From assembly GCA_977016875.1 (NCBI GenBank), contig CDRNST010000275.1, positions 248,001 through 312,000 of the forward strand: DNA of 64,000 nucleotides, written 5' to 3'. Of this stretch, positions 19,565 through 24,422 are shown in pieces. Source of the DNA: Pavona decussata (Eukaryota). A program made the position numbers and the translations under genes. The notes beneath the pieces are model-generated. The model saw only the letters and a list, made by a program, of their open reading frames with translations. It ran no database searches and was not told the origin of the DNA. Numbering within the stretch: position 1 is the first letter of the stretch; each line of letters opens with the position of its first letter.

Positions 19565-20226
19565 GATCTACAGTTTTCTTTGCCAAAACTCAGATACAAA
19601 ATTTCGTAACTCCGGAAATAATATTTCCTTCCGTTCTTGAAGGGGCAAATGTGTCCTTAAAATACAAAAAAAGGGTTATTAATTTCGGGGAATACGGTTC
19701 CTTGGCACTGTTGCCTTGGGAGATCAGTGCCAGACATGTTTCATTTGGCAGATGTCCATTTCATTTCTAATTCAGAACCAAAGCACACGCTTCTTTTCCA
19801 GACGCTTCCTTGGCATTGTATTCTTAAAATAAGCCCAATTTTTAGTCTTTATCGACTACCATATGACTTGTTTGTACAAAGTGTGAAATTGTCTCCGATA
19901 TTGTTTGGCCGTGTTTTTAACAATATCGGAGACAATTTCTAACGTTGTACGAACAAGTCATATGGTAGACGATAAAGACTAAAAAGTGTCTGGAAAAGAA
20001 ACGTGTGCTTTGGTTCTGAATTAGACATGAAATGGACATCTGCCAAATGAAACATGTCCGGCACTGATCTCCCAAGGCAACAGTGCCAAGGAACCGTATT
20101 CCCCGACATTAATAACCCTTTTTTTGTATTTTAAGGACAAATTTGCCCCTTCAAGAACGAAAGGATGTATTTTTTCCGGTGTTACGAAATTTTGTATCTG
20201 ACTTTTGGCAAAGAAAACTGTAGATC
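19565..20226. mobile_element. Near-perfect palindrome of about 660 bp (foldback element)
   Basis: gatctacagttttctttgccaaaa...ttttggcaaagaaaactgtagatc, with a loop near 19903-19918 and an indel of about 35 bp between the arms. Confidence 0.9.
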
Positions 20227-20835: not shown

Positions 20836-21395
20836 TATCATACCGCAGGTCAACAGACGCATAGTGTGACAAGTGAAAAGCGTGACCGTTTCTTAATTAT
20901 ACAATAGAATTTGCGAATTGCAAAGGGTTGTAAATCTGATTTTCATGAAATTTTCCAGTTTTATGTTCATACAAACCTTGATGTATGTGTACAATCTTGA
21001 TGTATACAAGTCATACTTATCTCGATGTACATAAAGAATTCTTAATGTAAATGTACTCGCACGATTCTTTACGTGGACGGGGTGAATCTTGATTTATATG
21101 AATAAGGGTTGTTTATCTGTACGAATCTTATTGTTTTGTCCGTTTTTGACAAGGGTAAGTATCAGATATCTCTCGGGAGATAGTTTTTTTTAAGAGGAAA
21201 TACTGTTTTATTCTAAAACTGAAATTTCGGAAATTCTAACCGGAAACGGTGTTGCCCCCATTTAATTTTAATCCAACAACTTTCGTTAGGAGCATCGAAG
21301 AAAAACAACGATTTCAGGTGAGATTTTTCTCAAAAAATTTCAAACGCCAGTTTTACCAGGCCCTTAAAAACTCATGTGTCCAGCGCTTGTGCCCA

Positions 21396-21632
21396 AGGTC
21401 CCGTTTCTCGAAAGTCCCGGTAACTTACAGGGCCCGATAAGTGTCTTTGGTGATAAATGTTTCTTAACAGAAGTCAATTTTTGTTAGTTTTGTATACTAA
21501 ATTTTAAAATCTTATAATTCTATGAAAACATTGGCCAAATACCATGTCTGCAATCAATGTGTAAAAAACATTTCAAAAGATACAAGTTTATCGTGCCCGG
21601 TAGTTACCGGGACTTTCGAGAAACGGGCTCCT
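21396..21632. mobile_element. MITE with TIRs of about 30 bp, immediately upstream of the NERD-helicase ORF
   Basis: ggtcccgtttctcgaaagtcccggtaact ... agttaccgggactttcgagaaacgggctcc. Confidence 0.85.
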
Positions 21633-21709
21633 CAGGCCCCACAAGCAAAGAGGATCGGGCGGCCCTGGGGACGAGCTACACGATAACGATAGTGAAAGAC
21701 GAAGTGGCA

Positions 21710-23729
21710 ATGGCTTCCTCGTTTACAGTACAAGGACCAGCTAATGAATCCCTTTGTAATTTGGAGGTAGCTTGTGATGCATCCCTTTGTAGACTTTTTC
21801 CTGAGTGGAAGAGAACTGATCGAACTTACATGTTCCCTCCGATTTTTCCATTCCGGTACATTGCTCCGACCGGCGAAGCCTCTGGCGCAGTTCCGCTTAG
21901 CAAGGACGTGAAGGGAGACGAAGCTGAATTGAGGATGTTTCGTGCTCTTGACAAGTTTGGACGAGAAGACAATCAGCCAATGTTCGTTCTGACGAAATTT
22001 GAATTTAAAGAATTCACCAAACAAGTTCTTTTGGGAAAACTCCCAACTGAAACTGTCGACTCTCTCTTCGCTAGTTTGAGTATAATGGACCTCCGGCTCG
22101 AGAAATCGATTTTCTTGTTGTGCACAGGAGGGCGGGAGTTGTCCTAGTAGAAGTAAAGGCAACGGAGAAGTTCAAAAGCAACCGCTATCTGGATGCTAAA
22201 AAACAGCTTGACGTAGCAGAAAAGGTTATTCGAGCTCTTTTGAATGCAATAGGCATAACACTTCCTGTTTACAAAGTTGTTGCCATGCCAAACGTGGCTG
22301 ACCCCGGCCGTGACGTTGCCGGCTACATCGATCTTCGAAAGCAACATTTAGTTTTGGGTGATAAGGACAGTGACGATGTCCGCCTACTTGTTCGTTGGTG
22401 GAAGGAACATTTTTGTGAAATGTGTTTTGACGAGGTAGGAGATACACTATTGAAGTTCATATCCATTCTTGTAGGACAGAGAGCGGCCATCAGCGCTACA
22501 GCCAACATTCTTGCAGGAGTGTCCAAAACAATTGATGAACAGAGCTTTCTTGAAAGGAGCTATGCTAAGCTTGCCAAGAAAGGGGAGCGTGGCTCTAAAA
22601 TGGTGGTAAAGCCAACTGTGAAAACCGGTTTAGGCATTTTGGCAAAACAATTTATGTTTTTGAACAGAGAACAACTACACGTATGGGAAGGCCCACGGTT
22701 GCAGATAATTATGGGTTCTCCAGGCAGTGGAAAGACAATTTTGCTTCAATTTAAGGCTTTGGAATGCGCAAAGAAGAATGAACAAGTGCTTGTTGTGGTA
22801 CCATCACCGCTTGACAAACTTTACACTGAATTCTTTACCAGGAATGGGTTAAACAGTGGTATAACTGTCGTCATCACTTTTCACCAACTTGCTGATTTTC
22901 TTTCCAAGGAAGCAGAGGTACCAACAGACCCATTCCATGTCTTTGTTGATGAGTTTCCAGCACTCTTTTTTGAAGAAAACAACTCTGAGTTACTAGAATC
23001 CTTCCGAGATTTCCTTTCGAAGCACCAGCATCAGTGGATTGTTGAAGATAGTGAGCAATTACTCCTTGCTGATCGATTTGAGTCATTTGAAAGGGAGCAA
23101 GACATGCACACTAGAATAGATCCCATACAAATTTCTTTATTTTGTTGTTTGTTATGCAAAGACAAAAACTTTGTATTTTCAACAAACCTGGTGACAATAA
23201 TGAGATACACAAATGAAATATACAACTTTCTTATTAAGCACTATTATCAGCTTTCGTCAGTAATTAAGTTGACAATTGATATGTCAAATCATGATGATTT
23301 CAACATCGATCAGACTGTTTCCAAATTACAAATTGGCCACAACATCTGTGGACCTCAGGTCATCGAGGAAAGAAGGACATATAAAACTTCCAAAGAACGT
23401 CTGCACCATTGCTTGCAGGTCATCAACAGTGAGCTCAATGAATGGTTGCTGCAGGATGACGAAGAAAAGCCTGATTTTTGCAAAGTTGCCATCCTAGTCA
23501 ACGACCAGAATGGGTTGATGAACTCTCTCCACACTTGAAGGGGCAAGGTATCCCAGTTTGTAGTATTGGAGATTTTAAAAATGCAGTTGTGCTGGATTAT
23601 GAAAGTCGTGCTTTATCTTATGAGTGGCCAATTGTGATTGCCATTTGCCAATCCAAGAGGAATTTTACGTCAACTTCACGAGCTACAGCTCGATTGCGAA
23701 TAATTTGGTGGCAGCAGTCTAGGAACTAG
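21710..23729 (+). pseudogene. Intronless NERD/PD-(D/E)xK nuclease + SF1 helicase (Schlafen-like C-terminus), about 673 aa when reconstructed; frameshifts at about 22100 and 23505
   Basis: Three overlapping ORFs join into one protein: GDEAE..F and EIDFLVVHRRAGVVLVEVK (NERD), AKKQL, NREQ...GSPGSGKT (Walker A), VFVDE (Walker B), and VVLDYESRALSYEWPIVI...TSRATARLRII (C-terminal helicase motifs). Confidence 0.85.
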
Positions 23730-24313
23730 CCCACAGCATGGCTGGTGGACTTTACGTCTCTGGCAAAATAGCTTCAATTTCATTTTATATGAAATTAGCT
23801 CCGTTGAATACTATGGTAGCACTTTTGTTATGTTTGTTTTAATGCAACTGAAGCGATTTGCGACAAATTTCGTCGCTTCATTCGCAATATAAACAAATTT
23901 TATTCACGTAATTTCCGCGATGTCCTTGAAAATACCTTTCTAACTCCTATGGTAGTGCGTCTTCAAAAGGTCTTTTCCTTAGCAACGTTTTTTTCTTTGT
24001 GAAAAATGTGCTGTATGATGGTTTCAATACAAATAAATGTTTGGAAGCGATGAGTCACACAACAAACTTGGCCGTTCTCTAGTCCGACTTTGAGTTGAAA
24101 AAAATTGGCTGCATTCAATCTGATTAACTACTGAGATGCTTGCGTAGAAAAGGAATCTAATCTGAGTTAAGAATGCCTTCAACTTTCCTGTTGTTTCAGT
24201 TCCACTTATAATTTTTTAATCGTCTTTTCCTTATTGCTTAAATCAGCATAATAATCAATTACATGGTTTCATTGCTAATGCCAAGTGCCGTGACACATGT
24301 CCTGTGAAACTGT

Positions 24314-24422
24314 TAGCCTGCGAACACAGAGGTATTACCGGCTGTCGCTTCTCTCCGCCGAAAAAGTTTTCGGCGGAAAGAAGCGACAGCCGGTACAGTT
24401 ATACCTCTGCGTTCACAGGTTA
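24314..24422. mobile_element. Hairpin MITE, TAGCCTG family, perfect 9-bp TSD
   Basis: tagcctgcgaacacagaggta...tacctctgcgttcacaggtta. TSD tgaaactgt is at 24305-24313 and 24423-24431. Confidence 0.9.

Follow-up and report, generated by a model that had tools for sequence, protein, structure and literature searches.

A frameshifted allele in a family of NERD nuclease-helicase genes of the stony coral Pavona decussata

Background

A stretch of 64,000 nucleotides from the stony coral Pavona decussata (NCBI GenBank assembly GCA_977016875.1, contig CDRNST010000275.1, positions 248,001 to 312,000 of the forward strand; referred to in the following as the window, with its first letter as position 1) harbours at 21710-23729 on the plus strand a gene that joins a NERD-type nuclease to a superfamily 1 (SF1) helicase. 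With moderate confidence, we regard this gene as a broken allele of a NERD nuclease-helicase family whose members are putative defence enzymes. The identification of the gene and the states of its alleles are together held with high confidence, and a defence function of the family, which is argued from the analogy with bacteria, is put forward tentatively. The window gene consists of one exon and encodes a protein of ~680 amino acids (aa) with four parts, namely an N-terminal segment specific to the family, a PD-(D/E)xK nuclease of the NERD type (E...D...ExK), a helical linker with a WW motif and a compact SF1 helicase, whose core is of the DUF2075 or Schlafen-group-3 kind. The copy in the window is a segregating pseudogene, and intact paralogues reside elsewhere in the same genome.

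Defence by a single protein that combines nuclease and helicase is known from bacteria, as exemplified by Nhi; what is new here is the family of animal NERD-helicases, for which our search of the searchable literature library found no descriptive paper. In this paper, we will initially examine the domain architecture of the window gene and the evolution of its family, and then turn to function, allelic state and the mobile elements of the locus.

Results

Gene structure

In the open reading frame (ORF) listing the coding sequence is split over three frames (Table 1), none of whose pieces contains an internal stop. It begins with an ATG at 21710 and terminates with a TAG at 23727-23729; the first piece includes the first NERD helix with the conserved glutamate of the GDxAEL motif, and the third carries NAVVLD..SYEWPIVIAI together with the motif VI arginine (SRA). 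The pieces were searched separately, and only for the phylogenetic tree were they joined with an X at each break. A preliminary description made from the letters of the window had recognised an intronless nuclease-helicase gene here. The motifs on which it drew, i.e. EIDFLVVHRRAGVVLVEVK, DAKKQL, LNREQLHVWEGP..GSPGSGKT, HVFVDEF, NAVVLDYESRALSYEWPIVIAI and TSRATARLRII, all lie where it had placed them, and the single exon was borne out in the window gene, the paralogues and the orthologue. The architecture that it proposed is likewise upheld, but the copy in question has turned out to be a broken allele.

Table 1. Features of the NERD-helicase gene in the window and of the insertion adjoining it (X1, X4, X5 and X6 denote sequencing runs, see text; nt, nucleotides)
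Feature	Position	Strand	Remarks
ORF piece 1, 128 codons, frame 2	21710..22093	+	start codon and family-specific N-terminal segment (MFPPIFPF..APTG.ASGA)
Frameshift 1, 2-nt insertion (CG)	22094..22095	+	relative to the intact orthologue and the X4, X5 and X6 alleles
ORF piece 2, 469 codons, frame 1	22096..23502	+	NERD catalytic core, helical WW linker and most of the helicase
Frameshift 2, 1-nt deletion	23503..23504	+	relative to the orthologue, X4, X5, X6 and the second X1 haplotype
ORF piece 3, 74 codons and TAG, frame 0	23505..23729	+	end of the helicase C-lobe
NERD-type PD-(D/E)xK nuclease domain, broken by frameshift 1	21914..22350	+	Pfam PF08378, family matches and fold search
Nuclease catalytic D (22108-22110) and E-x-K (22150-22158), unbroken in the window copy	22108..22158	+	
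Compact SF1 helicase core without 1B/2B inserts	22640..23726	+	Q-motif LNREQL; Walker A 22714-22737; Walker B DE 22948-22953; motif VI arginine 23679-23681
Probable 3' untranslated region	23730..24000	+	contigs end at ~23994-24026 in two runs guessed to be RNA
MITE-like insertion, ~245 bp	21386..21634	.	perfect 26-nt terminal inverted repeats (21400-21425, 21602-21627)

The nuclease half

The Pfam model of NERD (PF08378) matches the window at 22075-22700 with E=1.3e-4 and 22.9 bits, above its cut-off of 22.1, and the NERD N-terminus of the preliminary description thereby also passes the profile check that had been named for it. Among family members 13 of 21 matched NERD at E<=0.01, the distant members P0254 and P0264 scoring 28.4 and 29.0 bits, respectively; one intact paralogue (L002) had by itself no Pfam NERD match. 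The catalytic signature of NERD nucleases, a glutamate in the first helix followed by D...E-x-K, is present, with the latter part at 22108-22158 of the window. The corresponding residues E80, D134, E148 and K150 are invariant in both family alignments (A1, A2), as are E143, D145, E159 and K161 among 13 distant representatives of the family.

The N-terminal half was furthermore found to have a restriction-endonuclease-like alpha/beta fold, and the fold search with its model retrieved almost exclusively PD-(D/E)xK nucleases; an AlphaFold model of residues 1-300 (pLDDT 82) had no Foldseek match at E<=0.001. Taken with the NERD-helicase models of PADLOC (see below), Pfam NERD and the fold search back the fusion of NERD to an SF1 helicase that had been proposed from the motifs. 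The coral protein is predicted to be a metal-dependent nuclease, whose substrate is probably DNA and not tRNA.

The helicase half

Together with the nuclease residues, Q317, the GxGKT motif (334-338), the DE pair (408-409), R490 and R651 are invariant in the coral alignment. For a model of the whole protein (pLDDT 81), Foldseek ranked SLFN11 and SLFN14 highest, with E-values from 7e-16 to 1e-11, and every other helicase in the list had an E-value of 2e-7 or worse. Similarly, when the family profile was compared with all chains of the Protein Data Bank, the best match was SLFN11 (E=0.004), followed by SLFN5, and no UvrD-like chain appeared at E<=10. Alignment by hhalign to the Schlafen helicase exons of this coral, which were compared singly, gave E-values of 4.4e-5 and 1.7e-4. 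The protein possesses, in other words, a compact SF1 core that is nearest to the Schlafen helicases in both structure and sequence, and it is predicted to act as a helicase.

The differences from UvrD, Rep and PcrA are considerable. The structural alignment covers 315 of the ~620 residues of UvrD, whose 1B and 2B domains are without counterpart in the coral helicase; at 365 residues the latter is too short to accommodate them. The UvrD models of Pfam (PF00580, PF13361) gave no significant match, and a check for UvrD_C, which had been suggested along with the preliminary description, yielded at best an E-value of 0.068 in one paralogue.

Despite the nature of its helicase, the window protein was ruled out as a Schlafen. 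The long (group III) Schlafens such as SLFN11, SLFN14 and SLFN5 possess a Schlafen core (AlbA_2, PF04326) and a SWADL linker domain (PF21026), neither of which occurs in the coral protein, whose nuclease has a different fold. PF04326 is absent from the window pieces, the paralogues and 21 family members, a genome-wide search with it matching other loci only, and the PF21026 linker is absent from all family members examined. The likeness to Schlafens therefore comes down to a shared DUF2075-type helicase, and the bacterial NERD-helicases and Nhi provide the better comparison. A derivation of the Schlafen linker from a NERD domain by degeneration has a low probability, as both the sequence comparison and a fold search of the ESM Atlas lent it no support.

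True long Schlafens exist in this coral as well. Two multi-exon genes that combine AlbA_2 with the linker and a helicase, located at C30:746218-757439 (L043, L044) and C151:556257-575557 (L045-L047), are bona fide long (group III-like) Schlafens, with PF21026 scores of 65 and 43 bits, respectively; their exons were compared one at a time.

Paralogues, orthologues and selection

Searching the 602-Mb assembly of this coral with the family profile, we found three intact single-exon paralogues of 664 aa (contig C129), 698 aa (C198) and 989 aa (C195), which gives the count of intact paralogues that had been called for with the preliminary description. Two decayed copies are located on C129 within at most 50 kb of the intact paralogue on that contig, and three loci on C319 hold the N-terminal module only. 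The copies within this genome are 35-40% identical to each other, and in a tree of 126 rows the four full-length copies fall into four separate deep clades. The window copy pairs with P0122, an intact 695-aa orthologue, inside the starred clade that includes Montipora foliosa. The genome thus contains at least four old paralogue lineages with orthologues across Scleractinia; of the large clusters, those from molluscs are nearest.

The paralogue on C195 (192550-195519; L032:2550-5519, minus strand) belongs to a separate deep clade, and an insert of ~250 residues parts its WW linker from its helicase. The three loci on C319 (143006-143587, 191138-191623 and 215335-215862; L027, L030 and L029, respectively) are ORFs or exons of ~230-250 aa with the nuclease module alone, and are possibly first exons of larger genes. 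In L027 and L030, both of which end in ..LVMR, the catalytic glutamate of ExK is replaced by glutamine (..FFQVK and ..FIQVK).

Named relatives were found in stony corals only (Acropora cervicornis, A. palmata, Montipora foliosa and Oculina patagonica), where they are annotated merely as 'uncharacterized protein'; statements on taxa beyond these rest on the labels of ESM Atlas clusters. Eukaryotic clusters, for the most part from molluscs, are nearest among those with at least 50 members, both when language-model features and when the fold of the N-terminal half are compared, and the next are bacterial clusters in which NERD occurs together with SLFN-g3_helicase (PF09848), AAA_19 or UvrD domains. 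The spread over corals and molluscs and the lack of any informative annotation agree with the earlier suggestion of an invertebrate family without characterised function.

A search of 1.84 billion cluster representatives with the family profile retrieved 1063 at E<=1e-3, and 13 distant full-length representatives (16-28% identical) share an invariant E, D, ExK, Q, GxxxxGKT, D and two arginines. Because of these 1063 matches and the invariant nuclease and ATPase residues, the architecture of the window gene is beyond chance. A further homologue search with the alignment of the 13 distant representatives found only a self-match. Within the orthologue group the ratio of nonsynonymous to synonymous substitutions (dN/dS) is 0.26-0.30 at dS values of up to 0.7, and the branch leading to the window copy is not visibly relaxed; the family is under purifying selection.

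Relationship to bacterial nuclease-helicases

The best PADLOC matches of the window are bacterial NERD-helicase models, namely RTasNERD-Hel (E 4.2e-10) and NERD+UvrD (6.9e-8), followed by Nhi (9.4e-5) and AbiO (1.6e-4). These bacterial proteins (PADLOC 'NERD+UvrD' C3a187 and the DRT-associated 'RTasNERD-Hel') show the same order of domains, NERD and then SF1 helicase, as do those that NCBI names 'nuclease-related domain-containing DEAD/DEAH box helicase', often with PF09848. In the ESM Atlas they constitute the nearest non-animal clusters, both in their features and in the fold of the N-terminal half. With 500-600 aa they are nevertheless shorter than the coral protein, lack the N-terminal segment of the animal family and show low sequence similarity to it. 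NERD-helicases are enriched in bacterial defence islands (bioRxiv 10.64898/2026.09.30.754977).

A second counterpart is Nhi (SERP2475) of Staphylococcus epidermidis, in which an N-terminal PD-(D/E)xK nuclease and a DUF2075 (PF09848) SF1 helicase form one polypeptide; it was shown experimentally to act against phages, with both activities required, and was proposed to degrade phage replication intermediates, and DUF2075 is also the helicase of Schlafens (bioRxiv 10.1101/776245). The coral protein has this architecture in common with Nhi, although the match to the Nhi model (PADLOC PDLC02372; E 9.4e-5, 19.2 bits) is weak and confined to the N-lobe of the helicase. The coral proteins also exceed Nhi by ~200 aa, possess the WW linker and an extension that is conserved at the N-terminus, and have a NERD-type nuclease; their genes are animal nuclear genes. 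The coral family is the animal counterpart of the bacterial NERD-helicases and Nhi.

No relatives were detected by tblastn in plasmids and phages, and in 301 Planctomycetota genomes the family profile found nothing but a probable contaminant. The latter, which a scan of bacterial and archaeal genomes had brought up, is a contig of 1123 bp (L011 / G001:C853, JAKSDK010000247.1) from a metagenome-assembled genome of Phycisphaerales, which encodes the helicase half (family profile E 1.7e-76, 34% identity to a coral paralogue). It was rejected as a bacterial relative and is probably eukaryotic contamination, since it is the only strong match among the 301 genomes.

Proposed function

Many animal innate-immune modules are common to bacterial anti-phage systems. 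By analogy with the bacterial proteins, we favour the reading that the coral protein would be a defence enzyme that targets nucleic acids as a single protein. Its SF1 helicase would load on foreign or aberrant DNA (e.g. single-stranded DNA or replication intermediates) and translocate along it, driven by ATP, and the N-terminal metal-dependent nuclease would cut the DNA that the helicase has engaged. We infer the substrate and the immune role from the relatives of the protein; the latter is backed indirectly by the birth-and-death evolution of the family, by null alleles that segregate and by a dN/dS that is rather high.

Alternatively, the family could consist of housekeeping nuclease-helicases of DNA repair or replication, similar to Dna2 or UvrD, with the window copy being a redundant duplicate that died. 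Dna2, UvrD, HelD and FBH1 are indeed among the structural matches of the coral protein, and both the purifying selection and the retention of catalytic residues across deep clades would be expected of such an enzyme. The phyletic spread is patchy, however, with named matches in stony corals only and the nearest large clusters in molluscs, and of the characterised bacterial proteins, those most closely related act in defence. Moreover, the family has several old paralogues and decayed copies in tandem, and at one locus at least two alleles segregate that were broken independently; such birth-and-death behaviour is unusual for core repair genes. We therefore consider a housekeeping role unlikely, though less so than the alternatives discussed below.

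It is still less probable that the family was acquired from bacteria by an old horizontal transfer and is now a decaying relic, devoid of function in animals. The intronless genes, the several pseudogenes and the bacterial NERD-helicases as nearest annotated relatives outside animals would all fit such an origin. A functionless relic, however, should hardly show a dN/dS well below 1 over a dS of ~0.7, residues of active site and ATPase that are invariant across clades of less than 20% identity, or full-length ORFs that are intact in many species and, within this genome, in at least four lineages.

Allelic state of the window copy

The intact orthologue P0122 (contigs L009, L010), which shares 94% of its nucleotides and ~90-92% of its amino acids with the window copy, served as the reference for insertions and deletions. 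Two frame-breaking and three in-frame indels (-12, -12 and +6 nt) separate the window from it. For a view of the alleles, Logan contigs of four runs (X1, X4, X5 and X6) were placed on 21300-24300 of the window. Contigs of X1, which is probably the sample of the assembly itself, equal the window exactly over both frameshifts at a depth of ~70-85; one of them is an exact match over 21740-22547 and spans the CG insertion. X1 contains in addition a second haplotype, and X4 (another sample) showed no other than this one; the second haplotype lacks the CG insertion, possesses the C after 23503, and has two frame-breaking indels of its own, i.e. an additional CT after 21739 and a missing nucleotide at 23535. 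All four indels are absent from X5 and X6, two runs guessed to be RNA that bear the same organism label and stem from other samples and studies; both carry the two 12-nt segments, as the orthologue does.

The window frameshifts in contigs, a second and differently broken allele, and alleles elsewhere without the four indels identify the window copy as a segregating pseudogene. The locus has at least two independently broken alleles besides alleles whose frame is open at these four sites, and the sequenced individual seems to lack a working copy of this paralogue. Since the catalytic residues are intact and no further stops have accumulated, the inactivation is recent and the pseudogene very young. 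In X6, a single contig of 2343 nt covers 21694-23994 at ~98% identity, and the contig cover of both X5 and X6 stops by ~24027. This pattern is suggestive of an unspliced mRNA with a 3' untranslated region of ~270 nt, as far as contigs and a guessed RNA label permit.

Conversely, both frameshifts might be errors of sequencing or assembly in a gene that is intact in this individual, as would be in keeping with the preserved catalytic residues, the lack of other stops and the alleles of other individuals that do not carry the indels. This we regard as very improbable. Contigs from X1 agree with the window across both sites at the depth given above, neither site is a long homopolymer, and the other X1 haplotype is frameshifted too, at different sites. 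The agreement with X1, being probably that with the source sample, is a matter of consistency and not an independent proof.

Mobile elements and neighbouring sequences

A miniature inverted-repeat transposable element (MITE)-like insertion adjoins the gene ~75 bp upstream of the ATG (Table 1). It is the sole copy in the window, and its summed contig depth of 1e5-1e6 points to a very high-copy repeat. As it is absent from the orthologue contig L009 and from the second haplotype, in which X1 and X4 share a direct joint of 21354 to 21633, the MITE is a separate, haplotype-specific insertion.

The preliminary description would have been overturned had the ORF proved to be the cargo of a transposon, of which no evidence was obtained. 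Compared with the orthologous locus of another coral (L035), the DNA is similar from the ATG to just past the stop and otherwise in a single small collinear block 10 kb downstream, with no shared terminal repeats. Neither ORFs of the size of a transposase, reverse transcriptase or integrase within +/-10 kb nor, at the sensitivity used, relatives in a pattern scan of IMG/VR and in phage and plasmid collections were found. That the ORF is the cargo or remnant of a transposon or integrated virus, with copies spread by transposition, is consequently the least probable of all explanations: the gene is intronless and multi-copy, some copies are decayed, a MITE lies next to this one and NERD-helicases are mobile in bacteria, but the searches just described speak against it, the MITE arrived separately, and the copies are old, few and only 35-40% identical, each with its own orthologues in other corals.

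Two further structures flank the gene. Between a giant upstream gene and the NERD-helicase lies a foldback (19565-20226) with inverted arms of 260 nt (92% complementary), a spacer of 142 nt and a nested inverted pair of 70 nt, which is probably another non-autonomous element. A near-perfect palindrome of 29 nt (24336-24395; 97%, with a 2-nt spacer) is situated ~600 bp downstream of the stop.

Elsewhere in the genome, matches to PF09848 on C129 (1.93-2.03 Mb) were considered as Schlafen-like helicases and rejected, as they comprise only the P-loop region of HEPN-NB-ARC-TPR STAND genes. These form a tandem array (C129:1931828-2031515) of at least ten single-exon ORFs of 912-1045 aa (one member is L049:2399-5260, minus strand), each with HEPN_DZIP3, NB-ARC and TPR domains, i.e. 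STAND/NLR-like with an effector of the RNase type. The distance of 190-290 kb between this array and the NERD-helicase cluster suggests a region rich in immune genes.

Discussion

Several observations weigh against the interpretation of the window gene as a broken allele of a NERD nuclease-helicase defence family. The NERD match is marginal and passes the cut-off by 0.8 bit. In the helicase half, the Z score of VIA-align ties the core of UvrD (25.7) with SLFN11 (26.8), and the term 'Schlafen-type' therefore rests on Foldseek, the sequence profile and the absence of 1B/2B inserts. The window piece does not attain the cut-off of 24 bits for PF09848 (SLFN-g3_helicase/DUF2075), its match of 15.1 bits (E 0.015) being confined to positions 3-71 of the profile, which is the Walker A region. 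Regarding the alleles, those of X5 and X6 count as intact by the four indel sites only, so that nonsense changes elsewhere are possible; both window frameshifts were seen only in X1, probably the assembly's own sample; and the RNA-like runs were guessed to be RNA and studied as contigs rather than raw reads. Finally, the immune role is derived from the bacterial analogy and from patterns of birth-and-death and null alleles, which are suggestive but unspecific.

The profile check for a DUF2075 or Schlafen helicase, envisaged in the preliminary description, was accordingly not passed by the window, and PF09848 was matched at E<=0.01 by none of the 21 family members; an exon of this coral's genuine Schlafen helicase, too, reached just 18.5 bits. 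From the likeness to the helicase of long Schlafens that had been pointed out there, what stands is that SLFN11 and SLFN14 are the best solved matches by Foldseek and profile; the membership in PF09848 is not borne out, and the tie with UvrD tempers the structural part.

For the study of coral immunity and of nuclease-helicases in animals, the family has practical advantages. It is compact (660-990 aa) and intronless, with clear active sites, intact members and natural null alleles, and is hence directly testable; coral individuals with and without working alleles permit a comparison of genotype and phenotype. The NERD-helicases furthermore provide an outgroup for the origin of the helicase half of vertebrate Schlafens.

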